Source: Polymyxa betae A26-41
Taxonomy: Eukaryota > Protista > Endomyxa: Phytomyxea
DNA length: 64,000 nt
Direction of reading: 5' to 3'
Assembly (NCBI GenBank): GCA_003693705.1
Contig: RBZT01000125.1
Span: 186,001-250,000 of the forward strand
Shown here: in pieces, positions 10,386 to 60,118 of the stretch
How the letters are laid out: each line of letters begins with the position of its first letter
Numbering within the stretch: the stretch's first letter is position 1
Notes under the pieces: model-generated
Told to the model about the DNA's origin: nothing
What the model saw: only the letters and a program-made list of their open reading frames with translations
Databases searched by the model: none
Made by a program: the position numbers and the translations under genes

Positions 10386-12738
10386 TCATTTAGCAGCAGG
10401 TTTTGCGCGTTTACTGAGAAGCTTCTCTAGAGTCTTCATCGCCTTCGTGACTGATTCTTCCATCGCATCTAACCTAGCATTCAGGTTGCTTTTATCACCG
10501 TCAGCTGGTTTAACTCCTGTTAATCTTGAAAACACCTCAGGAGCCATCTAATTACCATTTAGCAACAAATTCAACCTGCTCAATGGCGAGACTGTTACCG
10601 TTTGTGTATTCACTATACTCAGATTGGTTGATGGCCTCGTTTTCCTCGCTTTCAGCAAAGACGACAGATCCCTTTCTGCCTTGTCCAGCAAAATCTTCGT
10701 GGCACCTTCGTAATTGCCCACCAGTCTATGTGAACATTAGACGTCTAGTGTAGTTCTGTGTACGCCGCCCGCTTTACCTGAACATGGATTGTGTGGCAAC
10801 TCGCAAGAGGACGGTTTCTCCAGTACTCCTTAGGCTATACGGCCAGATGTTCGTCAAAAACATTCCGATTTCTCCTAGAGATGTTCCATTAACGTAGGTC
10901 TGATAAACTATGTTGGCATTGCTTGACGACACAGCTGCAATACTGCCTGTAATGATCAAGTACCTATGAGACTGTTAAAATTTCCTGCCAGAATCCAGCC
11001 TTTGTGCTGCTACCAATAGTCTGTTGGGTATCCATAGGTTGCCACATATTGGCCAGGCCGAACTCGGATTGTCTCGCCTGCAGCTAGGACGTCAACCTTG
11101 GCGTCCTCATTGCTTAGCAGTTGAAGGAATGATGACGTTTCTAACGTCTGTAGGCGGAGATGTGAACATGACATGAACGCTGATTTCGTGACCGACATAC
11201 CGATTTATAGATGGTCTGAATAACCTCTGTCCTTAAAGATTTGCTCATATCACTCATCAATGGAGCCCAATCCATTCTGACTTGGCGGTCCTGTCTATAG
11301 AACGCCCCCATCTCCCGAACCACACAGGCTTGCAATTTCGGTGGCAAGCGCTTATCGCTGATCAAAGTGCTGACCTTGTGCATGTTCTCGCGATAAAGAG
11401 CGCTTTGGCTGTCAGCCGCTTGTAGAAGGGAACTAGCAGGCCCATGTCATTCATTGAACGATTTGGAGAAATGACCAGAGAAGCCCAAAACCCTAACCTG
11501 ACTGTAGCTGTAACATAGGAGAATACAGTAGCCCCTGTTGTCATAACAATAATACTCGCCAACATTTCTAAAGAGCTCTTAGCATGGATGTCTCCATACC
11601 CGACTGTTGTTAACGTCTGCCATCCCCAATCTAGATAATTGTTAATCATACCATGGATGCAGTTTGGAGCCTTCGTCTTACATAGCGAAGCAAGATACTG
11701 GTATTCTAAGGAGGTGTCGCTGATGCCGACGTTCCACGCTTGCTGGATCCAGGAGCCTTCACCTGAAAGCGAGCCGACTTTGTGCCATAAACAAGCGCTG
11801 AAGTGGCCGATAACAAGCATAGTGACGATCAGCTTTAGACAACGAACTGCACCCTGATGCACAAGCGGGCTGTATTCAAGATCGTAGAACAATTTCTGGA
11901 ATCGCCTTGTCCTCATAAGCTTTGCCAAGCGCAGCAAGCGAAATGTAAGACGAGGGATCTTCATAGTTTTACCAATTGCTGCAAATGTTGAGACATTGGA
12001 ATCAGGCAACACGGCTGTATAAGGAAATGACGACAGAAAATCAATAACCATCCAGCCCTTCGCATACGCAATCGCAATCTGTTTTAGGTCGGTTACGATT
12101 TCACCGTTGGGGCCATCGATAGCAGTAAAGAAAGTCATGACAAAATCGATCATGAACGAGATATCGACGATCATATCCAGTGGTCCATTATAATCAGTAT
12201 GGATATCGAATGCTTCCCGAACAGGTAATACACAGACAGTGTAGCCCAACAGAACGACCAAGAATAGCTCCCAAAAGCGTTTGAGAGGGTTATCTGGCAT
12301 CAAAATATACCATGGGGATTCTCTGAGCAGCTTCTTCTCCTCAACGGCCACTCTCAACGCCTCCGTGAATGTGTTCATGATTGTTTCGGCGGTGAAGTCG
12401 TCATTTCTTTTCTCTTCGACTTGCTTTTTTCCTTCTTGTAAAGCCAGCTGTCTGAATTTGCTCATAACCGGGGTGAGTTCAGACGAAGCCGTTGCTTCTG
12501 GGGGCTTTGCTGTTGCAGTGATGTTAGGCAGAGGGCGCTCGAGAGTTTCATCACTCGTAAAACTTTCGGTGACTTTTACAGCACTTTCGACAAGCTTATC
12601 GAACGATGTTCCGAGACTGCTTTGGCGCTCTCTCGTAGCATTCGATGTTGGATCAAGGGACGATAATTTTAGAGGCTTTGGGTTAGCGGCCGTTGTAACT
12701 TCATTCTGTTCATTGACGATTATAGCACCAGCCCACAT
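10386..12738 (-). CDS. Voltage-gated K+ channel with cyclic-nucleotide-binding homology domain (EAG/HCN/CNG superfamily), paralog 1
   Basis: S1-S6 segments, IAxAYAKGWMVIDFLSSFPY, S4 RLTFRLLRLAKLMR, pore TLTTVGYGD, C-linker and CNBD (PGQYVATYG, SLGEIG). Confidence 0.93.
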
Positions 12739-12817
12739 TGCTGGTAGATCATCGGTAGTGCGACAGTACCCGAGAAAAATCTATGCACTTTCATTGTATA
12801 TTTATTGTAAATATCTA

Positions 12818-15064
12818 TCAAATGTTAGCTATTGAAGACAGTGTCTCAATCTGCCCAGAAAGATGATCAACCATCGATTGCAACCGAGTTATTCTTTCAG
12901 GCACACTGGCATCGGGTGCTTTAACAGGTTCTTGATTAGCATTGCTTGCAGACAAAAATGACTGCGATAATGTTGATTTTAACTCGGACTCTTCGAGTGA
13001 TAAGTCAGATAATCCAGCATTCAGATTGGCTGTGCTTCGATATCGATTCAGTTGTGTCGAAGGGGAAGCACTTGACAATGTTGAGCGACTATTTCCCCCT
13101 TGTGGACTATCGGAGGGGGATCCCGATCCCGAATCGACGTTCTTTTTAGCTAAACACAGTTTAGCATAATCCGTTGTAGCTAAATCGATAAGTAACGACG
13201 TGATCCTGCATTCGTGCATAAATTCGCGAACAACTGACCGTCGCATTAGAACTCACCCCTCATAACTTCCAGCTATGCGTAAGAGCTTCTGTATCGGCAA
13301 TCGAAGTACAACAGCGGCATATATGCAACGAATGCTGGCGAACCACGTTGTAGTTAAGAATATACAAGATTCGCCAAGACTTTGCCCAACGCTGTATTTT
13401 CTATACACCACATTTGAATTGCCGGAAGACACAGCAGCCAGCACGCCTCGTCGGACAAAATACCTAACAACTCATGAGTGCCACCAGCCAGGAATTGTAA
13501 TCAGTTGATGTCTCTCACCACGAATCACATAGAAACCCAGCTGTTGCTAAATATTGACCTGGCTGTAAATAAATCTCTTCGCACGATGCGAACAGTTCGG
13601 TATGAAACCCAGGATCGTTGACATGCCGGATAAATGGGGATACCTTGATAACATCCTTCATTGTGTGTGCTATAACATCCTTCTGTAACTTCGGAGACAT
13701 GTCTTCCATTAATGAAGCCCAATTATGCGAATGAGATACAGCCTTCCGATAATACGAGCCGACCTCACGAATAACTCGTACTTGAAGCCGAGACGGTAAT
13801 TGCTTTTCGTTCAGGAAAAGCGAAACTTTGTGCATACGTGACCGATATTCACTGCTTGTTCCGTCTGATGACTGAACGATACTGCTAACCGTTGCAGTTA
13901 TATATGAGAACATTGTGGCACCTAACAAATAATTAGCCGTTTAGCATAGTTAGTAGCAAGCAACCTAATGTCATAATGATCATGGAGAAAATCAGCTCTG
14001 CTGGCGATCGCCCAACAATATCACCATATCCAACAGTAGTCAACGTTTGCGTTGCCCAATCTATTTAGCATTTAGAGGCTTATCACAATAATCAGATGGT
14101 TCTTACAAAGTGACATGCAATACAGGTAACCAATCGAAGCACCATTAAGATTGTCTTGATCGATCATATCAAGCCATGATCCATTGCCTCGATTGAGATC
14201 GCCAACCTTATACCACAAACATGCACTAAAATGCACGATGGCAACAATCAGCATTACAACTTTCAGCACTCGAACAGCGCCTTGATGAACAAGAGGGCTA
14301 AATTCCAGCTCGTAGAAGAACTTCCTGAATCGATACGCTCTGAAAAGTTTTAACATGCGAAGTGCTCGAAATATCATTCTTGGGATTTTCAGACTCTTTC
14401 CAAGAGCTGTCAGGAAAGACACTTGAACATATGAAAAATTGGGAATCAAAGCGAATGGAAACGACGACAACGCATCGATCCAGAACCAGCCTGTCAGATA
14501 GGTTTTCGCAATCAATTTTGGGTCAGTAACTAAATCTCCCCATTCATCTTCATAAGCCAAGAAAAACGTGATACAAACATCGGCAATGAACAGGATATCG
14601 ATGATTAGGTCCAAGGTCGTGTACGACCCATCAGTATCGAATACTTCTCGAATAGGCAGAAAGATCAAAGTATAAAGGAGCAGCAACGAAAGAATTAGCT
14701 CCCAAATTCGTCGACCCATATTGTTTGGCATCAGAATATACCATGGATATCTTTTCTTTGAGACACCTTCTTCTAAAGCTGCTTGTAAGGCTTCTGTAAA
14801 CGTATAGATCATACGATCTTCGGAATTCTCCAGCTGCTTCTTCCTGACCTCTTCTTTCCCGATTCGGCCAGCTATATCTTTGAATCGTCGCGCGGCTGGA
14901 CCAAGAGGGGTGGCATTAGCTAATTTTGAGGACTCATCGGTGGCAGAAGCCAAATCTGATGCGGTCGATTCAACAGAGTTCGAAGTGTTCGACGTTGTCG
15001 TTCTATGTGTCGGCTTCTTCTTCAATGTCGCATCTGGTATTATACCCCATGCATGCTTAACCAT
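12818..15064 (-). CDS. Voltage-gated K+ channel with CNBD, paralog 2 (tandem duplicate)
   Basis: PWYILMP, YLTGWFWIDALSSFPF, RALRMLKLFRAYRF, TLTTVGYGDI (about 14020-14050), PGQYLATAG, SLGES. Collinear with paralog 1. Confidence 0.93.
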
Positions 15065-15139
15065 CCTTTCGCCTAGGCTTGATGCCGTACCAATGCATAC
15101 AGATATTTGAGGAGATATTTTCAGCTGATAAGCGAACCG

Positions 15140-15449
15140 TCCATAATATCATTGGTGTCATGTGACAAGCTTCCAGCAGGCGATACGCATAACGCTATCT
15201 CCCTAATCCCAAATACATAAAACAATGCAGACGAAGGTGGGTGTTAACAATAGATGGAAGTTAGGCCTAGGCGGTAGCAATGTTCCATGAATCCATAATA
15301 TCATCGGTGAAAGGAGACAAGCTTTCCTTGCATAAAGCAGGCGATACACATCATAACGCTATCTCCTTAATGCATAAAGCAATGGAGACGAAGGTGGGTG
15401 TTAACAATAGGCGGAAGTTAGGCCTAGGTGGTAACAAAGTGCCATGAAA
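15140..15449. repeat. Diverged ~150-bp tandem duplication (2 copies) upstream of channel paralog 2
   Basis: tccataatatcat...gcaggcgatac...cataacgctatctcc...gacgaaggtgggtgttaacaatag...gaagttaggcctagg...ccatgaa occurs at about 15140-15291 and 15292-15449. Confidence 0.9.
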
Positions 15450-29467: not shown

Positions 29468-31041
29468 ATGCCGCCAAGAAGGATTATGTCGCTCGGCCGC
29501 TGTTATGCTCGTCTGTTCACGACGACGCCGATCGCTGGGTTGAGTTATGAACAGAGCCGGATCGCTTTGGTGCAGTCCATGGCCGATCGGCTTGGCAGCG
29601 ATGCCAATGTATCGCTGTCATATACGCGAAAGCGTTCGAATCCGTCGGACGAAAGCATGGACGATAATGAAACGAACATCGGCTCGGCTCCGGATTCCGA
29701 TATGACCATCACGTTCCTTGGTACTTGTGCTGGATCTCCAAGCTCAGTTAGGAATTCGTCTTCGTTGGTGTTGACAATGCCTCATACTGCTTGGATGTTC
29801 GATTGTGGTGAAGGAACTCAACATCGAAGTATCTGTTGTCCATCTATCTGCCTGATCGCTATTGACATGGTTTCCAGTGTTTAAATGCCTTTCGCCCAAA
29901 GTGAAACCAAGTGCTATCGATCGTATCTTCATTACACATTTGCATGGAGATCATGTACTAGGACTGCCTGGAATGCTTCTTTTTCTGAATAATGCCAATC
30001 CGACACGAGTTCTTCCACTTCATATTCATGGGCCACCTGGCCTTCGATCTTATATCCACAATGTGCTCAGGTTGAAACGAAATCACCGATCTGGACAAAC
30101 CGAGCTAATCTGCGATTCTCTAATAGGTCAATAGGCAGCTACATTCAGATACCTTTTTACGTTCATGAATATTCACCTGTAGACAACGGAAGATTATCTC
30201 GAATGTAAAACCATTTCTAAGATTAACTATTCTATAATACCATGTTGCATTCAGATATAGCGACGGGAAAATGGAAATACATGCAGGAAGAATCAAGCAC
30301 ACGATTGAGTGTTGGGGATTCATTATCACCGAGATGGACAAGAAGGGCGAGCTCAATGTCAAAGCCCTTGAAGATTTAGGCGTACCTAAAGGTACCAGGA
30401 ACTGCTTGCACACTTGTGTGTGCTTTGTTCAGACAACATTTTAGGTCCATGCTATGGCCAGCTGAAGGCCGGTGAATCCATACTGTTGCCTGATGGACGT
30501 ATCCTAAACGGAAACGATTTCGTGGCTAGTACGATTCCAGGAAGGAAGATTGCCATCTTAGGGGACACTAACAATGCTGATAACTTGATCAATAAGGCGA
30601 AAGGCGCTGGTATTGCAGCAAGTTAATTATTTCCGCTTCGCTCAGATTTCATATTAGATGTTGTAGTCCACGAAGCGACACTTCCCGATCAGGATGAGAG
30701 CGTGGCAATAAGACGTGGCCATTCTACACCTTCTATGGCTGCCAATTTCGCTCGGAAAAGTGATTCGAAACTACTGATTCTGAACCATGTCAGTCCGAAA
30801 GTAAATGAAGAAGGGTTTGCAGTCTGTAATGGCATCCCACCCGTAGACATTCGTCAGCAGGCAGTAGGCACATTTGGTTCGGGTAAAAACCATAACCAGA
30901 AGCTATACCGCTCTCTGATTTTTTTTTCCAGAAAATGTTTTAGTTGCTGTCGACTATCTTCGAGTTGATGTCAGCAGGAAAAGTGCAGTAGAAAGGCGGA
31001 AAGGCCCAAACCATCAGATCCACTCAAACCCGGGTCAATAA
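29468..31041 (+). CDS. rnz: Ribonuclease Z, short form (tRNA 3'-endonuclease) with N-terminal extension
   Basis: [40 protein letters not shown], exosite [39 protein letters not shown]. Confidence 0.94.
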
Positions 31042-31299
31042 TAAACTACTAATTTGTTTATATACCTAAACTGTTTGGATGCCTGCCTAGGTAGTAGCGC
31101 TTGTTAAAAACGCTAAAATTTTCATTAACTTTTTTTCCATTTTTTTGACAAGCACGGCGAATATATTACGTTGCATCTAAGTGTCGCCCTGTCACATTAT
31201 AACTGTCCTTGATCGGAACTGAACCGCTCATTTGCTTTCTAATCCCTAACTAGTGACGTCGACGGCGGCGAACGATCGACGCCGAGAGGCTTCTTCAGA

Positions 31300-32371
31300 A
31301 TGGCTACGACCGCCGCCGAGAAGTTACGGATCGCGACACACTTCATCTTGCAGAGCCCGACCGGGCAAATCGATCAGGTCTTACGTGATGTTCGGGTTCT
31401 GCTCGGCAGCGATGCCTCAGTCCTGGGTAAAATCCAAATGGAGGCGATCCTAACCAAATACAATCAAACGCAATTTGTATTCGCAACATCTCCTGATTCA
31501 CCTGATCATAATATCCTTTGCTGCCCTCAAGCTTTTGTTGATGGGTCTATCTATTTTGATCCGATCGCAAAGAAGGTAATACCATTTTGGACTTACAAAA
31601 TCAACGATTTAGTAAATCTTTTGCAGCACTATAAATTTGATAATATCAATCGCACCTGGAGTGCAGACAGCAGCAAACCCAAATCGCTGAATTCCAACAT
31701 CGAGCAGTATCGTGCATTAATCCAGGATGCTGTTCAGAAATATGCAAGCAGCACGTATTTAGACGCTAGCAAATATGCAACGGGCGTCTTCGCAAATGAT
31801 CAAGGTTCTGACCTAACGCCTATGCCTTTCGCTTTTGACAAACTGCCTTTAGGTGACATTACCATGATCATTAGCGCCAAGAATGTTGCACTGCATAATT
31901 TCTGGTCAGGAAGCTGGCGTGGCATTTTCACAATGAACGTGAGTGAACAAGGCCTTACGCAGCTGTCCGCTCGTATCAAGATTAACGTGCATTACTTTGA
32001 AGACGGAAACGTTCAGCTCAACACGGAATTCAACCAAACTGAAACTATTAAGGTAGAAATAAGGCAATCTGGGAGTTGGATGTTGTCCCAAACATTGAGT
32101 AGGTTGAAGAACCAGGTGCTACAGCAGCGAATGTTTATTCGATAATGGACTCAATCGAATCCGAGTTCCAAACCAAGCTGGAAGAGCTCTACGTTGATAT
32201 GCACAAATATACATTCACAGGAATGCGCCGGTTCCTTCCAGTAACTCGTAATCCGATGGATTGTAAGGCTATGAACACAGACCTTGTAATGTTTTTCTCA
32301 AATGTTTTGTAGGGAACCCCAATGCTCATAAACTAGCGCCCCAATTAAAAATTAATCAAATCTATGAATAA
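31300..32371 (+). CDS. CAPZA: F-actin capping protein subunit alpha
   Basis: FILQSPTGQIDQVLRDVR, NFWSGSWR, INVHYFEDGNVQLN, MRRFLPVTR. Confidence 0.95.
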
Positions 32372-32427
32372 CCTTATTAAAGAATGGAGTATGTGCAATC
32401 TCTGAGTAAATATAATTTTTGAATTGT

Positions 32428-34005
32428 TTAACCGCAATCGGACTTGCAATCATCACCGCCTAATGGCTCGACTTGAATAGTGGAATGCGTAATACCAAAT
32501 TGTTCTTTTAGAATTCGTTGAGATGATGATAATATCTGAAAGATGGTCATTACACGACCTATAAATTTGTGCCAAAGGACAAACCGCTTCTTGATGACCA
32601 ATCTTGTCGACTTCTAAATGTACAGACAGCGATGTTTTGCCCGGTTTAATAGACCAGATATGGAGATCATGGACTTTCCTAACGTGAGCCACATCTTGGA
32701 GCTTTCTTCTCACCATTTTGTTGTTAATGTGCGTCGGGGCTCCTTCCATCAAAACGTGAACACACTCTCGAAGTAGACCTATCAGTCGCTGAACAATTGA
32801 AGGGAACCGAAATTGCATGAGGGCATACCGAGCGTTGAGAATAAGACAATAATACCAAATCCGAATGTGCAGATAGGGTCGATAAAGACCCAATTCGGGT
32901 GATACCAGATTAACGCTGAAGCAATAATCACTCCGACCTTGTATACAATCAATACCAAACAGAAGGATTCACTCAGCGAGCTAACCGATTGAACCATATC
33001 ACCAATCGCATGGACAATTGCAGCTCTAACATTGAGGTTCTCATGGCTGGGATGTTGATATTGCTCGAGCAACGGGTTCTCCAGATCCTTTGAACTGATC
33101 AGCAATTCTATTCGGAAAGTTGTTTGTTGGGCACTTTTAAGTCACTGTGACTATGAGAATGGCCATGCGACAGGTTCGGCTTGGATCCACATTCATCAGC
33201 ATGGGCATGAGAATGGCCATGCGACCCACTAGCATGTGAATGGCCATGCGACTCAGTGGAATGTGAATGGCCATGAGATCCATGAGAGTGCGAATGGCCT
33301 GAAGAATGCAGTACAAGAGCAATGATTGCATTAACAACAAGGCCAAGGCAGGCCAAAATCAACATCAGTTCTCCGTTGATGGGCGCTGGATTTTGTAAGC
33401 GATAAAACGCTTCTACAAACAATCCTCCAGTGACGACCCAGATCAAAATAATACTGAGGAGAGCGCCAATAATTTCAGTTCTGTACCTACCGCACGTTAA
33501 TCAATCTGTTGCTGGAATTTGAAATTACCTAACCATCCAAAGGAAAGGTGTTCGGTTGCTGGTCTAGCAGACAGCCACAATGCAAACACTGATATGAGGA
33601 ATCCTAATGAGGATCAATCATCTGCTTCCCATACAGAAATTCAAAAGCACACCTGCCAAATCAGCAAGCAGATGAGCGGCATCTGTCATTATTGCCAGAG
33701 AATTAGCAACGTATCCACCAGCAGCTTCGGCCACCATAAAAAACACACAGAACAAGGCGGCAATTAGTAGTTTTCTTTGAGCTGCAGCAGCATCTCTAGA
33801 CACCATAAGAAAAAAGAAGGATTTAGGGTACGCAATAATACCCTGAAACAAGGGCGTCAGCGGCTAATCCAGTACCAGGCCCAGCATGAATGGCGGTTAG
33901 CAATTCTAGCTGCGGATCGTCGGATTTGGTAGGATTTGCGTCCAGCCTATCTAAAGCGATGTCGCCGCTGGCACTGTCCACATGGCACATGGAGCAGCTG
34001 GACAT
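32428..34005 (-). CDS. Cation diffusion facilitator zinc transporter (ZnT/MTP1-like) with His-rich loop
   Basis: [17 protein letters not shown], His-rich SHGHSH repeats, [47 protein letters not shown]. Confidence 0.95.
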
Positions 34006-34357
34006 GGCTTAAGCAGTAGGGAGGAACACCTCGAGGAACAGGCAAACCAGGTTCCAGACAGGTAGAGCCGCGATCGTGCTGCAACAAGCGATCAGCTTGC
34101 AGTCGTTAGGGTAAGTGTGACGGCTATGACCGAAAAATTCTGGAACGAATGCGAGCGGGAACCCGAATACCGGCCCGATATTCAGAGAGTAACAAGACAG
34201 GCGGTCACTGCAATGTAGGAAATGGACGAGAGCACAAAATGGAACAGCAGGCAGGCGCAGTTTGTGTCAAACCTCACCATGATAGGCCGATGGCTGCGGA
34301 GTAAGGGCACCGCAATTGCATTCGAATTTGTTCCTTGTTTATTGCTGAACGTAAAAA

Positions 34358-35681
34358 TCATCTCCATTGGATTAGCGCTCTGCTCATAGGAATGATGTCC
34401 TCGTGGTAAAGTTCCAATCGAAGGTCAGGAAAGACGGTTCGCAAATCTGCAACGAGGGCAATATCGATGCCTTTCGTTCTTACCGCGATTATATGATAAA
34501 GTTGGGGACAACCTTTTCAATTGATTAGAACGACTTTGACAATCTTTGAAATTCCATACCTTGCATCAGCTCAAATAACGATTGCCTGTCAGTTATGCCG
34601 AATGAAATGTCAATTTTCTCCAAATTGCGGCACGTTTGGGATAGGGAAGAAATAACAGCGGGCGTAGCCCCAGCTTCCGCAACCAACAGGGAGATTAAAT
34701 TTGGGCAGGAATTGCTAATCGCTAATAAGCCTTGCTCTGTGACACGAGAACATAAGTTGATATCAAGATGCTTAACAACTCTCGCTGACGTCGAAGAGCA
34801 GAACGAATCGATTCCGGTGTCGGTTATTTGCGAGCAGCGGGCAATAGAAAGGTGCTTCAACGATTGTGGCAAACAATTCAAAGCCGCATCGGTAAGAAGC
34901 TGACAACCATCCAGCTCTAGACGTTCCAGATTTTGACACAATTCTCCGACAGCTTGAATTCCAGTATCCGATATCGATTCACACTTGTTGAGATCGAGAC
35001 GTCTGAGCGCTTGCCCACAAACACGAAGACATTGAATGAGATCTGTTGACAATGAAAGATGCTAAGACTGCAGCAAAGAAAGTTACCTGAATCAACCAAA
35101 CGGCTATGATCTTGAAAGCTTAATTGCTGAACTGACCGAAGACGGAGCTCGGGATTCATTTTGTAAAGTTTCGCCAAAAAATCGCTTTGACAGGTTAGCG
35201 AACGGAGCTTGGGAGCTCGACTAAGCCAAACACAATGATCGCGAATGTCCGAACAATAAGGAATCGGCAATGTCATCGCTTTGACTTTTTTCCAAATGCC
35301 AGGATCAGCAGAAACCTCGAACAGATATCGACATGTATGCCGAACATTACAGAATGAATCGCCGAACCCAACAAGCTCGAAAATCATCAGCCAAAGTTCA
35401 TCCGGAAGCAGAATTGAATCGCGAGGCGGCCAGAGCTGAAGATCTGGATACAATGCCAGCAGCTGTTCGGTAAACGAGACACGTTCGCCATACTCCAGAT
35501 CAGAGAGAATCGTTTCTTCGATCTCTTTGGCTTCAGCAAAGTAGAGAAGGCTTTGGATCTGGGGAAGCGTCACTTGCGCCTTCCCATTCATTGCATTATT
35601 GATTAGCTCCAACAAACAGCGTTGCTGTTCGGCTGCTGTACTCCAGCGAAAGCGCTCCAGCGCCGAGCTTGAACGTGACAT
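34358..35681 (-). CDS. F-box/LRR-repeat protein
   Basis: F-box LLPDELWLMIFELV...VRHTCR followed by cysteine-containing LRRs (LDLNKCESISDTGI, LELDGCQLLTDAAL, LSIARCSQITDTGI). Confidence 0.92.
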
Positions 35682-36115
35682 GAACTCAGTACTATAAAAC
35701 TGTAGTTAAAGATGGAAAGATATTAGCAGGAATGGGGCCATGAGAGCCACAGACTACGTAATAATGTATCGTTAAATCAGGCTACAGGAGAGTGTCAGTA
35801 GCCTATAGGGGAGCGTAAAGCACTGACTTTTTATAGAAAAAAATTAAAAAATAATGATAATGACGCATTCATGGTTGCGCTTTGCTGGGCATCAGTGGCA
35901 GGCAACAGGATTGTGACATCCGATATCTTTTTTGCTTAGCACCTCTCTTTCGTGAGTTTGATCCCGTTTCATATTGCGATTACTGTGTTTCATCGTCGAT
36001 GATTAGTCTCCTCTAAACCTGGTATGCTTATTTCGTCTGATTATGAGCTAAATACACGTTGAATCAGGTTTTCATAGAACGTGAAACGTGGTTTATTTAC
36101 AGTTTGGACATGATG

Positions 36116-38223
36116 TCAACTCAATTGTTTTATGTGCAAAATCTTACCATTTCGATTGGGTAAAAAGATGGGAGGTGTCTTGAATGGTGCTGGCGTCGGA
36201 GTCTGTCGAGCTGGCGTCGGAGTCTGTCGAGCTGCAGACGAGACAGACGACAGTTTCGAAGGCAGTCGACTCCCAACACTGCTGACAGATGGCGGTAATA
36301 CCAGCCCACAGACGTCCGTCGTGATATTCAGGTACCTTTGCAACGACCGTGTTGACGTTTGCGATTTCGGGATGTAGACTTGCAGCGGGCCATTCCTGGA
36401 TAATGCCGCCCGGGTCTGGTTCGTATCCAGCATTGGCCGTTTCGGATGCGGAATCGGATCTCCGACACAGAGTTTACGAACGGCACTGCTGCGCTGACAC
36501 AAGATCGTGTGATTGGTCAGATAAGCGAAGGCGCAATTGGCATCGTATGAATAACGTCCTGAATGGACATTAAACCCGCTCAAGGTTGGGCTGTCCATGG
36601 CGCCTATACCGAACCAGGTCAACCTAGATTCCACGTTTAGCTTGTCCCAGAGCGCACGGTCCTCCGGGTCGTACTGGAAATGGACATGCGGCCCGCTCCA
36701 CGATCCTCCTTCACATAGCGCGTCGGTGATGGTTGCTGCCACGTTCGACAGCTTCTGTCCAGTTAGGACTTGATCGCCGACCTTTACGATAGGATTGACG
36801 ATATGCTGTTCAGGGATTCAGTCATCGGTCATTTATGATCGTGCTCGTACATAGTAGAGGGTCTTCCATCCATACCCGTGATCGATTTCAACTCTGCATT
36901 TCGAGACCGACGAGACGGTTCCTGGCGCTGAGAAACAATTTCACATTTAGACAGCGCCCAAGAACTGCTTCCTGACCGGCGGCGACCACCGTCCATGTAA
37001 GGGGAGACGATCTCCTGAAATCAGATCGGCTGAAATCTAACGCCGTATAATGCATGTTGATAGGACTCGACTGCACGATCTGCTGCGTCGATAACGACAG
37101 CGCCAGAGCCTCATTTGAGGCGGCGAACATATCGCCTCGACCATGAGCGCTGCCTCCGATCGTCCACGTCTCACCTTCTGGGTACCTAGGCAGACGTTGA
37201 CCACGAATAGAACACTTCTAACGTTAATCAATACGGTAGGTGAAAAACATCCGGCGGAGGTCGAAGACAATCGGTTGTGCAGGACGACGTTGCTGTTATG
37301 ATTTGCTGATCATAGACTCGTCCTCGGTATCTGACACGATATAAGCTGGGTCCAGCACCTCCATTTCCTATCAACGACCCGATCTGTGCGTATGTTCAGC
37401 GATTTGGCTTTGATAATCCAGATGGTAACGCTCACATCACGCCCAGCGCTGAAAAACCCGTTGAATCGCTTGGTTAAGGTCGTCAATGAGGTGATATTTG
37501 TGGTTGAACCTGAATCCAGATTGACCAGTTCGATATTGATTGGTGCACCAGGCTGATATCCTGACATTTCCGGGTATCAGATCATAAGATTGACGATGAT
37601 GGATTCAGATTCGCACCTTGGAAAGAGCAGCAGATCGTCAGATAGCCTTCAGAGAGCTGATTGATGTTCAGAACCGAGATGGAGTTGATGGCGCCTTGTG
37701 GCTGGCTACAATCGGCATTCGCTCCGGGCAGGACCGATAGAGCCGCTGCAAATGGCGGCCCTGAGACTTTGACAGATGCGGTTCCTTGAAGAACAGAATT
37801 CAGATAAATGGATGCCTTGAAGGCGTCGTTGTCGGATGTCAGAAGCGTCCATATATACATCGAAGAATACGATAGCTTGTAGCATGCTACGACAATGTAA
37901 GAAGTTGTCTTTGCGCTCCAGATGAAAATATTGGTGAAGATACCTGAAGACGGCAAATTGGATGTTTTCAGAGCAGTTTGAAAATCGCCTCCAGAGCTAG
38001 TCCCAACTCGCAGCTCGAGAGTGCCAGATGTGTATCCTTGCCATGCGAACAGAATGAAGATTTTACCATCAGAAGAAGCAGGAAGACTTGATGAAGATGG
38101 TGTTATTGAGCAGTCCCAACCCAATGGAACCGTTGATGTTAGCGAAATTCCTGATAAAGTAAATGCTTCTGACACAGACAAAATCACAGAAAGTTGCAAA
38201 ATAAATCCAATTAAAGGATACAT
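36116..38223 (-). CDS. Secreted M23A (LasA/beta-lytic-like) zinc metallopeptidase, paralog A; 3' end uncertain
   Basis: Signal peptide (..ILSVSEA|FTL). Spliced core GGSAHG...HYTALDF...WTVVAAAPGTVSSVSKCRVEIDHGYGWKTLYYHIVNPIVKVGDQVLTGQKL...DALCEGGSWSGPHVHFQ...GRYSYDANC. Confidence 0.88.
36189..36234. repeat. 21-bp perfect tandem repeat encoding ARQTPTP x2 in the paralog A tail
   Basis: gctggcgtcggagtctgtcga appears twice. Confidence 0.9.
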
Positions 38224-38421
38224 TCTTAAGAGTCAACGTCGTCAGAACAATAGATATTGAACTGGTAGATATTCATGGCGCCATAAAAATCTGGTATGAA
38301 ATGAGGACGTTAAAATCGATCCAGGACAAAAATCAGGGACAGCATGAAACGACTCAATGGCTACCTAGAATTAGACATGTATCCTGGAATTTGCAAAGCC
38401 AACAGACCAATGTATTCGATA

Positions 38422-40999
38422 TCAGAAATCGAAAATACATAATGACAATAAGACGCAGATATACACAACAACTAGATCGCTGGCTTTCAGTGCTGAAGAG
38501 GTCGTAGATTTCGAATCATGAGTAACGTTTGATTGGACGTTGCTAGTTCGGAGGCCAGCAGCTCCACCAGCAACTGAGCTTTGAACAGTAGACTTTCGAA
38601 CAGTTCCAGCTTGCGCATTTAACGACGATCTTGCCGTGGAGAGCAACCTAGCTCCTGAAGTAGATGTAAGCGAGCTCTTGATGCTTGGCAAGTTCGATGA
38701 GGACATGCTGCTGCTCGGTGTTGAAGACTGAATCGACATCGAGGATGAGCCTGAAACAACAGCACTTGGCCTATTCGGAAGCTACTTGAATTAACAGTCA
38801 CCGAAATAAACGGATAACGTACTTAGCAGTCGCAATACCATTGCCGTTTGTTGATGTAGGCGCAGGAGTAGGTCCCGGGTTTCCCTACATCAGAAGTCAA
38901 AATCAACACATAAAAATTGTCATATAAACGCACGCCGGCACCACCACCACCACCACCACCACCACCACCACCGCCGCCAGGCGAAGGTCGAGCACTCGAA
39001 GTAGGAGCTGACGACAACTTTGATATCGGTACTGGATAGATAATTGGTGCGGTAGTGCTGTTTCTCAAGCAACCATCGGATGATAGGTTCAGATATCGTT
39101 GCGGTCGATTGACGACAATAGAATCGGTATCCGGCACGACATAAACCCTCAACCCGCCGTTTTTTGACAGTGCTCGGCGCGTCGCATTCACGTCACGATA
39201 TGTTGCACGATTATGGAGCAGTCCCTTGCCAACACAGGTTTTTGGCACCACAGATAGTTGGCGAACGCAAGTATCAGTATAATTGGTGACATACGCATAT
39301 AAGCAATCATTATCATACGAATAACGACCTCCATGGATTATATAATCAGAGAGCGTAGTACCATCTACAGCTCCAATTCCGAACCATGTTAGTCTACGAA
39401 TCAACAATCAGATTCGCAAAAATTTAGACCAAGTACACAATACTGAAAATGGAGGTGAGGCCCGCCCCAAGCCCCGCCTTCACACAGAGCATCTGATTTC
39501 AATAAAGCTGCAGCAGCCAGCTTCTGACCGGTTCTAACGTAGTCACCGACTTTCACGACCGGATTGATTAGATGCTAAATTCAGTGTTCAAATATCATAA
39601 CGTTGAAGGGGCAGATATCGTACATAGTATAATGTTCTCCACCCATGCCCATGATCAATTTCAACTTTGCATTTGGAGACGGTAATAACCTGACCGGCGG
39701 CTATATGTACGGTTAAGAAGAATCTAGTTCATCTAACCAAACGGGGCATACCAGATGCAGTAATAGACCAGTTTAAGGGTGAAAAATTCCGGGTGGGGTT
39801 GTTGAAATCCAAAGAGGTATAATGCAGATTTGATGGTGTAGCCTGGACGATTTCCTGCGTGGACGGTAGCAGCGCCAAAGTCTCGTTGGAAGCAGCAAAC
39901 ATATCACCACGACCATGTGGACTGCCACCTAATACCCAACGTTCCCCTTCCGGGAATCTACACAGGAAATTAGCGTCAATAGATCAGCCAACGGCTGCAA
40001 GCATACGGCAACGCGAAAACGTCAACAGGTGGGCGCAGGCAATCGGTTTGACAGTTCGTGTCAAAAACTATTTCCTGCCCGAGATATTCGGTGTCACGGT
40101 AACGAGCCTTGAGTCTGCTTGAACCAACGCCAGCCAAGCCCAATAAGTACCCGGCCTATTCTAGTTCTGAGCACAGAACAAACAAAACAAGATCAATGAA
40201 CCGACCTCACGATAGGCACTAAACCAGCCACTAAACCGCATCTTCAAAGGATTCAGTGTCGTTATGACACTGCTATAACCGCTTTCGCCATTCTCGATTT
40301 CGACACTGACCGATGACCCGGGCTGATAACCTAAATAAGGCCTGAGCATTTCCAGCGTCTCTGAAGGCAAAACCGACCGACCCTTCATGATGCAACAAAC
40401 GGTGACCATTTGTTCGGAAATCTCGTTGATGGTTATGGGCGTGGCTCCCGGGTTTAAGCTATTCTTTGAGGATGGATCACAGGTCTGAGAGCTGCCGTAG
40501 ACCAAGATCGTTTTGACTGAAAACGGGTATTTGACATAGGCAGATGCAGATCCGACCAAGGTCGAGTCAAGATACACGGCGACCTTCAGCTGATCTTGAT
40601 CGGATTGTAGCATGGTCCAGATTGCCGTTGATGAGTAAAAGACTTTAAAGCATCCTAGCATTGAATTAGTCGAGGATATTTGATTAGTATGGGAGAGCTA
40701 CCTGATGAGGCAACACCGGGAACCGTGGTAGGAGTAAGCAGCTGCAATGTGTTATTCGACGATGTTCGAATTTGCAGCGTCCCGGATGTGTATCCAGTCC
40801 AAGCAATCAGAACGTAGGCCCGGCCGGTCGTTGAAGCATCAATAGTAGATAATGAACTCGGCAGAGTGCAATCCCAAATACTGGGAGCTGAGTCACTTAA
40901 AGAGATACCTTCTAAAGTGAAGGCAGATTCTGCTGTCAATGACAACAGATGCCATACTGCCAGGTTTAGAACAAAGCGAATCCCGCTCTGCATTGCCAT
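38422..40999 (-). CDS. Secreted, probably GPI-anchored M23A (LasA-like) metallopeptidase, paralog B
   Basis: Signal peptide (..LTAESA|FTL). Core GGSPHG...HYTSLDF...AGQVITVSKCKVEIDHGHGWRTLYYHLINPVVKVGD...DALCEGGAWGGPHLHFQ...GRYSYDNDC, then Gly13, a Ser/Thr stalk and a hydrophobic C-terminus (VVVYICVLLSLCIFDF). Confidence 0.88.
38940..38978 (-). repeat. (GGT)11(GGC)2 trinucleotide tract encoding 13 glycines
   Basis: acc repeats on the + strand, in frame within paralog B. Confidence 0.95.
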
Positions 41000-41570
41000 T
41001 GTCTAATTATAAAATATCTGCAGGCGACATTTCACCAGCGCGTCTGGTTAGATATTTCCGGCGATCAGCGATTGTCTTGCTGGCGCCAGATATCTCGAGG
41101 TGTCGCGCGACGATGGGCCAGCATCGAACGAAACCGCCTTTTTTATCGTCATTCGTAAAACGTTCTGTTGGCTCCAACGCTATAACGGATCTGAAACGAC
41201 GAATGAATAAGGGAAAGGGTAATGAGAGGGATACCCGACTGAGGCACATTATGGCATAAACATATAGAGCAGCCTACCGATCCGAAATGACAGCTGTCTT
41301 TGTGCTAAAGTGAAAGGCATTGAAATGGCCAGAAGCGATTATGTTACTTTGGGCGATTTCGTTTCTGGTCGCACTGGGTTTTTTACACTGCGATAGCCGA
41401 CATAGTACGCAATTGTTCGACAGAGACGTCTCATTTTGCGTCTTTGTCGTCATCAGATCGTGGTGTCGTCAACATCCGCCACCGCCGCCAACGTTGTCCC
41501 TGCCCCGTGCCGAATGTCTAGCGACGACTGAGCGCGATCAGCGATCCGGGGCTTTGTCAGTTGCTGGGAT

Positions 41571-43203
41571 ATGCCAGATCCGTCATCGGCCGAAGCCGCA
41601 GCCTTCACGAATGCAGCGACCGCGACGGATTCCATATCCGACGATGCGAATGATGATGTCGCCCTTGATCGGATCGTTGTGGAGGCGATGGAGAACGGAC
41701 GTGATAGGGTCATGATTCTCCAGTTCGAGAGCCAGATCGAAGCTTTCGTTAAAGACGACACGTCGGTTTCCCAAGGCCTCGTGCACTGTGACCCGATCTG
41801 ATACGAATTTCGATTATAGGAGAACGCGATTAAGTTTTCCTCCCATGTCGTCGTATCATCGGTTGATCCTGCACAGAGTCGCCCAATTTTACAAAGTCGA
41901 CCATCCCTCCCAGCTCCTACCAGATGGCAAGCGACAGATTCTTCTCGTCAAGCAGAGCTTCTCGAGAATGTAAACGCTCGTTAACTCGATTGTTTGCATA
42001 TTTAGATTTTTCCTCCTTTAGACCTCGTATTCGCATTTGTGATATGGATGCCAGCACCATTAGTCCTATTACTTCGTCTTCGACGAATCAGGTGCAAGTT
42101 TCGGCCCCTCCAATGAGGATCATGAGGAGAGCTCCAGTCGAAAGTAAACCTGAGCAATCCCAATCGACTGGCCTTACAGAATCCGAGTGTTCCCTTCAGG
42201 TATGCACGCCCTTTCAGATGACATTTCTTGTGTTGACAGGACTTAGTCTCGTGAAGAAGCGTACGCGAAAGCCCGAGCGAAATTGTTCGAATTTGACCAG
42301 TCGGCTCAAGGCGATTCTCCCCCTCCAGATCTGGTCTACTCGGACTCAAAAAGCTTCGATATCGAACCTCATGAACACGATCTCTATAGGAGAAACGTAT
42401 TGGGTTTTATTCGCGATTGGCCCAATTTTTTATTGCTTTTTTAGGTGGGTCTGTATAGCCGTACATCGAACAACCCGCCATCTATGTACAACATTGGCCA
42501 AGCTGCTCTACCACAACGATGTATGACGATTTGATATTTCAGTTTGGTTTAAATCATTTGCTTGTAGTCCAGCCTTATTGGGCGTATTGTCGTACAGGCA
42601 TCCCTCCTATGGCTCAAAGTTCTGCTGCTTTAGGCCCAATGTTTTGGCCTCGAGCAAGCATGATGCCCCCTGCGGATAATAGAGGTGTGGTAAGCTGCTG
42701 CTTCAGACTGTCCAAGTTCAATTTGCTATTATAGCCTATGCACCTTTCTACGATCCTTTTCAGTCCAGGCAAAGTTTGTTTTCACCGCCTGTTCAGCCTT
42801 TGTTTGCCAATGCTCCAAATGTCGAATATGGAAGCTGGAAATTGAACGGTCAGGGCAAAGACGTTGCAAAAGCTGATTATTCATGTCGGTCTTTTTCATG
42901 CCGAATTAACAGTCAGCTGATTGCGATGGTTAGTCTGTACCAGCATGCTGGAGATCTATGATCTGCCGGAAAACGCGAAGAATTACCAAGTTGATATGAT
43001 TCTTGACAATCTCAAACAAAGGAATTGTTCGCTCAATTGGATCGCCGACGGACGCGTTATTGCTGTTTTTGACACAGCATCGGAAGCGTTGGATGCACTG
43101 CAAACAGTAAATTCGTTTTCCACACTGACTCCAGATTCTTATTAAATTATTATAGGTGAATGATCCCAGGTACAAACTCAGGCCTTGGTCAGGCGCAATG
43201 TAG
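41571..43203 (+). CDS. R3H + SUZ domain RNA-binding protein with C-terminal RRM-like domain
   Basis: DRVMILQFE...FPPMSSYHRLILHRVAQFY (R3H), MRIMRR...REEAYAKARAKLF (SUZ), HMLEIYDLP...LNWIADGRVIAVF (R3HCC1-type RRM-like). Confidence 0.88.
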
Positions 43204-44015: not shown

Positions 44016-46173
44016 TTAGTTCAGCGAATCGAGGTAAGCTTGTCGATATTGTAGCTTGGCGAAAGGCATATCAAAAGGTCGGTATCTAAAAATAATAAGT
44101 AAAGCGCCGACGATTAAGTGCAAGAAAAAAGAACATACTCTCCAATAGCATCCTTATTAAAGTAAGGTGGTTCAACGGTCTGCCAATCAACGCGCTGTAG
44201 CCATTTCCCGATGAAAACCTTTAACAATCCTTCACCCCAACCGAGGGAACGTGCAGGGCATGCCCAAATAGCTGCTGAAATCTGAGAATTTAAGTTGCTA
44301 ATGCTTAAACTCATACCTTCTTTTGGGTCATGTTCGGTTGGACATCCGAACGGGAAAGTGTGTTTCTTCAGTTCAGGATTATCCAAAAAACGACGAGGGT
44401 TGAATCGTTCTGGATTGTCAAAAAATTGTGGATCACGCATTGCTATCGGATAGTATGCAACTATAAACAAACTTAATTTTCCACAGTGCCTGGTCAGAAT
44501 TGCATTACTCAAAAGGTCTCCTTTTCTAATCCTATACGCTTTTCCGTTTCCTCCAGGCATGAGAAGATCTTTTTGGGCTCTTCGAGGAGCCAACTAATTT
44601 CACAATTATGTCGGTTTCAGATTCTCGAAAGCAGTATACCTGTCCTCGAATGTAAGCGCGATAAACTTCCCAGGTTAGGGAATCCAACAGAGGATATTTC
44701 TCGACATTTTGGACGCTTTCTACGGTCAAGTTATCCATTCCAAGTTCTTTGCGAAGTTCGCTAACTGAGCCCAGATTCTCTCCCAAAGAAGCAATAACAC
44801 TTGCAAAGGGCAGGGCCAAACCTAAGTTTGTTTCGAAACATGAGACCATAGATCATAAACAACCAATCACGATCTTACCTAACCCACTGGGAAGGCCTAT
44901 CGAATAAGTCAAATTGCGATCGAAATCTTTCATCTCTATTCCCGCTTCCTAGAATCCCAATTACAAATCCGTTACAAAAAATAGATCTCAGAAGACTACC
45001 TTCGCCATATTTTCGTATTGCTTATAGTAACGGCTAGAACGGGTCGTTTTGATCAAATCATCCAGGCGTTTGTATGCACCTTGTACAGTCCAAAGAATAT
45101 CGACAAATAGCTGCAGTGCACTCAGCATTTCCAGAAGATTACTGGAAATGAATCACCTGGCCAAGAATTTCTCCAATGAAATTGTCGGCACTAGGCTTCC
45201 CAATACACCTCTTGCCAAATTCCGTCATTACTAAATTGCATGGCGGTTCAGCTCCTAAAAGCCACTCGGTAACAAAGTAACCGCTTAAATAAGATGCAGC
45301 CTGTTCTCAGTCAGAACTATTCGAAAATGATCAGCATTACATACAGCATCTAAAGTTACAAATTTTGGGTCTTTGGCGAATCCCTGAATCATTTGATCAA
45401 GGCGGTACGTGAACGTTTTCTCGATAGCATCTTCGAAATCAGGCCAACGCTTTTCCAATATTGACATAAAAAACTTTCGCGTTTTCTGTGGCATTGCATT
45501 TAACAACCGACACTTATATGGTGAAGACAGCAGTTGCTCACAGAATGGCCTTCCTTTTCAGTGGCTAGGAAACTAGGAATGGATTTCCCGAAATAATACG
45601 GTACAGCTTGGAAGGGTCCCAAACTATGCTCGCTTTGTTAGATCGGAATCCCATTGCATTACCAAAATCTTACCGATGTTTTGGGTCTCGGTCCAAACTC
45701 TCTAGATTCTGGGTTAAAAACCAATGGACAGCTGTGTTTCCTGTAAGCACGACACAATCACATCCAAGATTAGTTCGGATACACTAAATATCACGATTAA
45801 AGGGATTATAATGTCTACTGCAAACACATACAGGTGCTCCAGGAACTGACTCTTGTAACTTTCGTATTTTTTTGATATTATCCATGACGGTTTCCAAAGC
45901 GTTCAACCATGGGATCACGTTGAAAGGTCCAAACCATTTACCGAGGCGGTCTAGATAAGTCTCATAGACCGGGCATTCAGCGATCTCGGTATAGCTGAAT
46001 TCGTCCATATCGCTTTCGGCAGGCTTCTGGATGCTCTTGGGCTTCACATTTTTCGACACGTATCTCTTCGCCTGGATCGGCTGGTTTCTCCCTTTTCCGG
46101 TGTCTTTCTGGACAGGGCATCCTTTCGACTCGCTAGTTTCATACATCCTGGTCTCGGAATTCTCACCCGACAT
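44016..46173 (-). CDS. Cytochrome P450, CYP74-clan-like (allene oxide synthase/hydroperoxide lyase-like)
   Basis: VFRTN near the N-terminus, YPLLDSLTWEVYR (ExxR), AMRDPQFFDNPERFNPRRF, heme loop FPFG-[insertion]-ACPA, no AGxxT motif. Confidence 0.82.
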
Positions 46174-51395: not shown

Positions 51396-52345
51396 ATGGC
51401 ATCAGCTGCTGCTGAGGTACTCGATCAGCAACGGGGCGGCTTCTGTTTCGACTTATGCTCTCGGTCAGTTTCTGGGATCTGTAGTTGGTTTTCGACGTCG
51501 ACTCAATGGCGCTTGCCCTTTGCAGGAATGAAAGGCTGTTGGCTGAGGCCAGTAAATCTGGCGTTGCTCTCCCTAAAGTGAAGAAAACCGGAACTACTAT
51601 CGTTGGTGTCTGTTTTAAAGATGGTGTGGTCTTAGGCGCTGATACTCGTGCCACTGAGGGTTTATTAATCCCGAGAATGTTTGCTTTTTATATTAACATG
51701 TATACAGGGCCTATCGTTTGTGATAAGAATTGCAAAAAGATTCACTACATTGCCGACAATATTTTCTGCTGTGGTGCAGGGACTGCAGCCGACACCGAGA
51801 ATGTCACGAATTTGATTGCTTCGCAGCTGGAACTGCATCGTCTGAATACCGGCAAAGAAGTTCGTGTTGTAACCGCTCTAACTCGTCTTAAGCAATACTT
51901 GTTCCGATACCAAGGATATGTTAGCGCTGCCTTAGTTTTAGGTGGAGTGGATTGCACTGGCAGTTATCTTTATACTATCTATCCGCATGGCAGTACTGAT
52001 AAGTTGCCTTATGTGACGATGGGATCAGGGTCTCTGGCGGCCATGGCAATGTTCGAGGCCGGATATAAGGACAACATGACCGAACAGGAAGCCATTGCTC
52101 TGGTTGAATCTGCGATTGAAAGTGGTGTTTTCAACGATTTGGGCTCTGGTTCGAACGTCGATGTCCTTGTGTTAACTCGCGACGGCGGCAAGGATCTTCG
52201 TAACTACAAGAAGCCCAATGAGCGGGTGTTTGAACGACGTGATTACAAATTCCCGCGAGGAACCACAGAAGTCCTCGCCGAAGTTAAAGAGACATTCAAG
52301 AGCAGGATCGTAGTTGAAGACGATGCCGCCATGACTGACGCTTAA
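51396..52345 (+). CDS. PSMB7: 20S proteasome subunit beta 2 (trypsin-like)
   Basis: Propeptide GGFCFD..RN..KTG|[49 protein letters not shown]. Confidence 0.97.
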
Positions 52346-59222: not shown

Positions 59223-60118
59223 ATGTTTCTGACGCGAAGCGATTATGATCAGGTTGGAGCGATGCCAGGATTCTGCGATCTGCTTGCTGAGACCGTATCG
59301 GTTGTATTAGGGAGTGAATACGTTCAGCCCTGAAGGTCGGCTGTTCCAGGTGGAGTACGCTATGGAGGCTATCAAGGTCGGGACGCTGTCTCGTCGCCGC
59401 TCTGGTTATCGTTGACGATCGATGCTTGCAGCTGGGATCGACCGCTATCGGTATTCAGGTGAAGGAAGGCGTCGTGCTCGCTGTAGAGAAGCGAATTTCA
59501 TCGAAGCTTCTGGAGCCGGCGTCGATCAAGAAAATCGTCGAGATCGATAGCCATATCGGGACTGCAATTTCTGGCCTCACAGCCGATGCTCGTACTCTGG
59601 TCGAGCACGCCAGAGTTGAATCGCAGAACCATTGGTTTATGTACAATGAGAAGCTGCGAGTGAAATCATGTGCCCAATCTGTATGCGATCTTGCTCTTGG
59701 ATTCGGTGAAGGTGATGGAGGTAATCAACATTTGTTAAGTATTCTGCTGTCGGTGATCAATATCTCAGGCATGTCCCGTCCGTTTGGTGTGGCGATGCTT
59801 ATCGCTGGAGTCGATGATGAAGGTCCCGTTCTATTCCATTCGGATCCATCAGGAACGTATACCAGGTATAAAGCGAAGGCAATCGGTGCTGCATCCGAAG
59901 GAGCGCAATCGACGCTCCAGGAAGAATACAATGCGTCGATGACGCTGGCGGAAGCTGAAACGCTGGCCTTAACGATTCTGAAGCAGGTCATGGAAGAGAA
60001 GATCAGCGATGTGAACGTCGAGCTAGCTGTGGTCAGCGCCGCTACTGGAAAGTTCACCATTCGTACACCGGATCAGCTGACAAACCAGATTTCCCAATTA
60101 GCAGATCCGGTTATTTAA
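59223..60118 (+). CDS. PSMA5: 20S proteasome subunit alpha 5
   Basis: [58 protein letters not shown]. Confidence 0.97.

Follow-up and report, generated by a model that had tools for sequence, protein, structure and literature searches.

The window analysed here is a 64,000-nucleotide stretch of the genome of Polymyxa betae A26-41 (contig RBZT01000125.1, positions 186,001 to 250,000), a unicellular parasite that lives in sugar-beet roots, and the subject of this report is a pair of tandem minus-strand genes within it, A (40999-38422) and B (38223-36116), which were delimited by three-frame reading and which, judged by sequence, encode M23A-derived peptidases. Tandem intron-containing paralogs with signal peptides had been proposed at this position in an earlier note made from the letters alone, and both this arrangement and the protein cores quoted there were reproduced. 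The draft genome comprises 1,001 contigs (27,085,946 bp, GC 45.1%; PMC6328671), and when the contigs were searched for copies (1001 contigs, 27,085,814 bases), A and B were the only M23A genes found.

Gene A (38422-40999) encodes 709 amino acids in 10 exons (40999-40702, 40654-40382, 40330-40206, 40155-40007, 39957-39752, 39700-39624, 39574-39444, 39393-38934, 38884-38823 and 38770-38422) separated by 9 introns, and is laid out as a signal peptide, a beta-rich N-terminal region, the M23A domain, a Cys-containing extension, a Gly run, a Ser/Thr stalk and a hydrophobic C-terminus. Gene B (36116-38223) encodes 582 amino acids in 8 exons (38223-37944, 37886-37617, 37560-37436, 37383-37235, 37185-36977, 36927-36851, 36805-36675 and 36623-36116) separated by 7 introns, and has the same layout, but ends in a basic Pro/Thr/Ser tail without an anchor. 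The signal peptides, of ~26 residues in A (40922-40999) and ~20 in B (38164-38223), were assigned from their sequence, with predicted cleavage before a conserved FTL.

Seven GT..AG introns of 45-57 nucleotides are common to both genes at the same position and phase (1,1,0,2,1,0,2), and A carries two more (introns 8 and 9); the three shared positions named in the earlier note (after LYY, inside FQ and before GYQPG) were correct, but belong to this larger set. Because the first seven agree in position and phase, these seven predate the duplication, as that note had also supposed. The predicted splicing was confirmed in contigs of two public runs, X2 and X6, which stem from two studies: the 7 introns of B are all removed, as are introns 1-7 of A; X2 contigs additionally remove A intron 9 (38822-38771), and for A intron 8 show a loose contig end resuming in exon 8. 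These runs are not labelled as RNA, and were taken as such because the introns are exactly removed. Separate transcript contigs were obtained for A (spanning 38393-41229) and B (36077-38339); the metatranscriptome X7 placed zero reads on the stretch and so has no bearing on expression. An additional intron near the 3′ end of B was ruled out by the transcript contigs. The contigs break at a GGT/GGC run (38939-38977) coding for 13 Gly in gene A.

All searches were run exon by exon or with unbroken genomic frames. A profile of bacterial M23A enzymes (LasA/Blp/pseudoalterin) was built from 39 sequences, and exons 5, 6, 7 and 8 of A and B aligned to it in order, at positions ~16-50, 64-88, 89-131 and 142-174. 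Exons 6-8 each matched independently (E 5e-16 to 2e-8, among 16 exons), and since they did so singly at consecutive profile positions, the match is not due to chance; exon 5 matched weakly because it is interrupted by an insertion. The only PDB matches of B exons 7-8 were three M23A structures (6IK4, 3IT5 and 8AF1). Single exons reached 14.6-17.4 bits with PF01551, whose gathering cut-off is 28.7. The M23A identity proposed in the earlier note was upheld, with similarity best to LasA, Blp and pseudoalterin rather than to M23B, and the formal placement rests on best matches and motifs.

The M23 family motifs (H(x)nD, HxH and the upstream catalytic His) were found in both genes, and in B every catalytic residue named for LasA and Blp (PMC9662197, PMC9783410) has a counterpart: His289, Asp325, His371, His410, His412 and Tyr440. 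The first zinc motif of B (37035-37145) runs from His289 (37145-37143) to Asp325 (37037-37035) as H-x35-D, and that of A (39917-39807) from His296 to Asp332. Exons 6-7 of B (36675-36927) carry Cys355, the YYH motif ending in His371 and split by intron 6, Cys401, and the HxH pair His410/His412, with His377, His416 and His418 in the counterpart of A (39700-39444). The 5′ part of B exon 8 (36440-36623; in A, 39393 to ~39210) encodes the M23A-specific C-terminal subdomain, aligned at an hhalign probability of 97.7, with Tyr440 at the LasA Tyr151 position, Cys444, Cys466, and a 9-residue insertion that bears an extra Cys456. Cys is present at all four disulfide positions (Cys355/Cys401 and Cys444/Cys466 in B), and the bonds are predicted from sequence; retention of the zinc, catalytic and disulfide residues, as the earlier note had read them, therefore holds for both paralogs.

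Several features lay beyond that note: an insertion of ~22 residues at the first zinc motif, replacement of the propeptide, the differing C-termini of A and B, and the two extra introns of A. The insertion is conserved in A and B, lies between the first His and the Asp ligand of LDF, and is retained in mRNA; the transcript contigs leave exon 5 unbroken, which ruled it out as an intron. It begins with HGRGD, an M23B-like HxxxD (Asp293 in B), so that two Asp are candidate ligands, of which that of LDF is favoured because of its spacing to the next Cys (28-29 residues in A and B, compared with 28-32 in 38 of 39 bacterial enzymes). The first-motif stretch is the most conserved between the paralogs, with 26 of 35 residues identical and proportions of non-synonymous (pN) and synonymous (pS) differences of 0.15 and 0.81. 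Since loop geometry determines M23 specificity (PMC9662197, PMC9783410), the insertion probably reshapes or gates the substrate groove, or changes specificity; as a speculation, it might stand in for the lost propeptide.

The N-terminal region (exons 1-4; 37235-38163 in B, ~255 residues, and 40007-40921 in A) is beta-rich, with 6 Cys common to the paralogs. A profile of 42 bacterial N-terminal regions gave no match to the M23A propeptide in exons 1-4 (best E ~1), and the region had no Pfam match and no significant PDB match. A weak lead to the ConA/LamG/pentraxin clan came from ESM features (score 0.91-0.94, from only 102-141 shared features); the structural model was all-beta at a predicted local distance difference test (pLDDT) score of 38, AlphaFold on single frames giving 38-40. 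Haemagglutinin matches were dropped (E 0.5 or worse). After the M23A subdomain, a short extension (36290-36440 in B) is conserved in both paralogs, with RRALS/RAALS, QRYLN, a further Cys and N-glycosylation sequons, and searches with it gave no homolog. The part confined to A (38422-38984) consists of the Gly run, a Pro/Thr linker, a stalk of 43% Ser+Thr and a hydrophobic tail, whose sequence suggests a glycosylphosphatidylinositol signal or a tail anchor; the tail of B contains an exact 21-nucleotide tandem repeat (36189-36230) encoding RQTPTPA twice.

Between A and B, synonymous sites are saturated (pS 0.7-0.9), and pN is 0.19-0.24 in exons 5-7, as against 0.33-0.46 elsewhere; the catalytic exons are under purifying selection. 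Run X1 (2020) yielded a spliced allele of gene B (36373-38242) that differs from the reference by ~3%. Three of its junctions have support, two through joints and one through a loose end, and its source is a divergent P. betae strain or a close relative. Of the codons that differ, 12 are synonymous and 8 non-synonymous (pN/pS ~0.25; Fisher p 0.0007-0.004), and single differences may be errors because depth was low (2.5-4.3), but gene B is under purifying selection between strains. Gene A did not appear in X1 at this depth.

For distribution, 1.84 billion cluster representatives were searched with the C-terminal 175 residues of B, and 54 matches were returned, ~51 of them M23A enzymes of bacterial type; three (P0001, the top match, P0011 and P0048) were dropped as repeat or giant-protein artefacts. 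Besides the bacterial propeptide, most of the M23A matches carry accessory domains of bacterial kind (for example PPC, PKD and CARDB). Because most carry no taxon label, they are called bacterial on architecture and on named relatives: the sole named match was Aliikangiella, and the named relatives of the top M23A match were Pseudoalteromonas and Vibrio. When the bacterial P0002 served as query, 22 proteins of bacterial type were returned; P0085, the outlier among them, has the bacterial propeptide. No eukaryotic homolog was found among the representatives, a collection that includes EukProt and the proteins of P. brassicae and S. subterranea, and M23A is likely absent from the Plasmodiophora and Spongospora relatives; weak evidence in the same direction is that M23 was absent from the supplements of three papers on these genera. 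A word-index search with B exons 7-8 found nothing at 126-400 residues and is silent on full-length kin; a metagenome scan gave two weak non-eukaryotic loci; a GTDB scan gave only short matches to residues 4-27 of exon 7, of no help in naming a donor; and viral contigs gave no match. Single exons (25-69 residues) gave no stable best match, and placement of the donor, like that of the family, is by best matches and motifs. Within the limits of the search, the gene is patchy in eukaryotes and its close homologs are all bacterial, in a family that is 97% bacterial (PMC9662197). An old transfer of a bacterial gene into an ancestor of P. betae is therefore very likely, and the bacterial origin proposed in the earlier note is supported as probable by these homologs. 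The genes are native to the P. betae genome, given their eukaryotic neighbours (capZ-alpha, cation-efflux, F-box/LRR and R3H genes), a GC that resembles the flanks, and spliced transcripts; no Rfam matches or transposon-like repeats were found at the locus. The capZ-alpha neighbour has its top matches in Spongospora (57%) and Plasmodiophora (52%). Being integrated, intron-bearing, transcribed and under purifying selection, A and B appear to be domesticated.

The best explanation, held with middling confidence, is that a bacterial gene was transferred and domesticated as a secreted and a surface-tethered peptidase, with a role that is most likely antibacterial. A bacterial M23A zinc endopeptidase gene would have entered the ancestor of P. 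betae, lost the bacterial propeptide, acquired a eukaryotic signal peptide and the beta-rich N-terminal region, and picked up seven introns before being duplicated in tandem. B would be soluble and secreted, and A would be tethered by its Ser/Thr stalk to the surface of the cell or spore, secretion and anchoring both being predictions. Zinc would be bound by His, Asp and the second His of HxH, while two other His would activate water and Tyr would stabilise the oxyanion. A and B are probably active catalysts, and both would, like LasA and Blp, cleave peptide bonds of small residues (Gly/Ala); the Gly-Gly specificity given in the earlier note is too narrow, M23A enzymes being broad (PMC9662197) and A and B carrying a long extra active-site segment. 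The likeliest target would be the peptidoglycan of soil or root bacteria met by zoospores, cysts and resting-spore clusters, and the chance that peptidoglycan is the substrate is put at about even. The antibacterial role is the best guess because of the activity of the family and the precedent of transferred hydrolases in antibacterial use (PMC6299479, PMC4241558, PMC4967989).

Several points weigh against this explanation. Few bacteria should be present inside plant cells, where P. betae feeds, and infected roots are the probable source of the transcripts, whose sample labels are coded. No NlpC/P60 or GH25 partner was found by exon-wise searches, which were weak. The His-Asp spacing is x35 in both paralogs, compared with x12-14 in 36 of 39 bacterial M23A enzymes, and lies far beyond the bacterial range of 7-20. 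In LECT2, the M23 fold bears an additional loop at the active site and is not enzymatic, though this protein also lacks a catalytic His (PMC9662197).

A possible but rather unlikely alternative is that the gene has the same origin and the protease is active, but now acts on Gly/Ala-rich proteins in the wall of the host or in that of the parasite's cysts or spores, with roles in attachment, penetration, sporangium exit or germination. M23A enzymes also cut proteins other than peptidoglycan, such as elastin (PMC9662197), the parasite lives mostly inside roots (PMC10953367), the N-terminal region offers a lectin-like lead, and conservation of the active-site insertion above all other segments (pN 0.15) suggests a new, fixed specificity. 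The pair would then represent, tentatively, the first M23A protease family of eukaryotes, a rebuilt bacterial lytic enzyme with a conserved active-site insertion, a possible lectin module and a tethered paralog, redirected to plant or self wall proteins, and would serve infection or spore biology in a vector of rhizomania viruses. P. brassicae and S. subterranea penetrate roots likewise, yet no ortholog was found there, and the transferred peptidoglycan hydrolases known from elsewhere stayed antibacterial wherever this was tested.

It is doubtful that A and B are non-catalytic or latent binders resembling LECT2, with the groove closed off by the insertion and the fold used for adhesion or peptidoglycan sensing. 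The H-x35-D spacing occurs in none of the 39 bacterial enzymes, A has a stalked and putatively anchored architecture, and LECT2 and EnvC are precedents; against this, A and B have kept every ligand, the two catalytic His, the oxyanion Tyr and the Cys despite saturated synonymous sites, and degenerate M23 proteins usually lose such residues (PMC9662197).

An ancient eukaryotic or Rhizarian gene, lost elsewhere or too diverged to be detected, is improbable. Seven introns, saturated paralogs and ~35-47% identity to bacteria do indicate great age, and with a query of only the C-terminal 175 residues and bacterial matches of 35-61 bits, divergent eukaryotic homologs could have fallen below threshold. 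Synteny with P. brassicae holds over three genes (29.5-33.8 kb) and ends just before the F-box/LRR and M23A genes, so that it is uninformative on the absence there at the DNA level. However, a collection holding EukProt and the proteins of P. brassicae and S. subterranea gave zero eukaryotic matches, and exon 8 of the paralog by itself reaches 106 bits, so that a true ortholog should have been seen. Bacterial contamination or misassembly, conceivable for an assembly binned from a metagenome (PMC6328671), is refuted by spliced transcripts supporting 16 GT-AG introns, and is opposed by the neighbouring eukaryotic genes, which share a contig at least 250 kb long, by the same GC, and by the variant present in another strain.

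The block syntenic with P. brassicae (29531-33779) consists of a metallo-beta-lactamase-fold gene, capZ-alpha and a cation-efflux transporter, and the ortholog of HROB, a gene of that same region in P. brassicae, sits at 3.9-4.4 kb of the window. The cation-efflux (ZnT-like) transporter (33108-33446) has a long His-rich loop, and its position ~2.5 kb away from the two zinc peptidase genes is probably coincidental. An F-box/LRR gene (34000-35681) is directly downstream of B on the same strand, and an R3H-domain gene (41300-42800, plus strand) is head to head with A; the upstream region common to these two is short, since the A transcript starts at or above 41229. Elsewhere in the window are a large ion-channel gene with two Ion_trans domains (11365-15148, minus strand), a cytochrome P450 fragment (44117-44593, minus strand), and two proteasome subunit genes less than 8 kb apart (51485-52342 and 59318-60115).

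Compared with the M23A enzymes of MEROPS (LasA staphylolysin, 3IT5; Lysobacter Blp, 8AF1; pseudoalterin, 6IK4), A and B are alike in motif order and in spacing from the LDF Asp onwards, and share YYH, ALCEGG..GPHxH, the Tyr151 equivalent, both disulfide pairs, the C-terminal subdomain and a secretion signal. They differ in having H-x35-D instead of x12-13, a 9-residue insertion and extra Cys in the C-terminal subdomain, a new beta-rich N-terminal region in place of the bacterial propeptide, spliceosomal introns, and, in A, a stalk and predicted anchor; because they depart from M23A in motif spacing and propeptide, they are a variant rather than typical members. One of the pair has probably been recorded before, as poly_jg8601.t1, a predicted secreted P. 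betae protein with a Pfam M23 match at 304-380 (E 3.5e-10; PMC12503489, supplement 1); it is probably gene B under a different gene model, since only two M23A loci were found in the genome, although its mature length is 524 residues and that of B here 562. It appears there as a table row only, and the text of that paper gives no subfamily, origin or function (PMC12503489). In Blastocystis, also a protist, M23 members were annotated as M23B by database comparison, with function left open (PMC5608401), whereas those of P. betae are M23A-like. The mammalian LECT2 is likewise a eukaryotic secreted M23 fold with an additional active-centre loop (PMC9662197), but is without a catalytic His, whereas A and B retain all catalytic residues and are specifically M23A-like.

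No description of a eukaryotic M23A was found in the openly accessible literature, to which subscription articles such as the 2022 analysis of the P. betae genome do not belong. The Dae amidases are further horizontally acquired peptidoglycan hydrolases of eukaryotes. The molecular basis of the dealings of plasmodiophorid zoospores and long-lived resting spores with soil bacteria and walls is poorly known, and A and B offer a testable pair of candidates in a virus vector that will not grow in culture on its own. Their conserved insertion lends itself to testing how specificity is determined by M23 loops. Alongside the NlpC/P60 enzymes of Trichomonas (PMC6299479), the GH25 muramidases (PMC4241558) and the hydrolases of Trepomonas (PMC4967989), the pair would be a further case of a bacterial wall-lytic enzyme fixed in a eukaryote, duplicated, expressed and apparently secreted; it differs in being a zinc M23A enzyme, in its setting in an intracellular plant parasite, in its extensive remodelling and in an activity that is predicted only. 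Eukaryotic capture of peptidoglycan hydrolases is already established; backed by spliced transcripts and selection, the pair extends the few cases of bacterial wall-lytic enzymes that eukaryotes have domesticated to a new enzyme class, M23A, and a new lineage, Phytomyxea.

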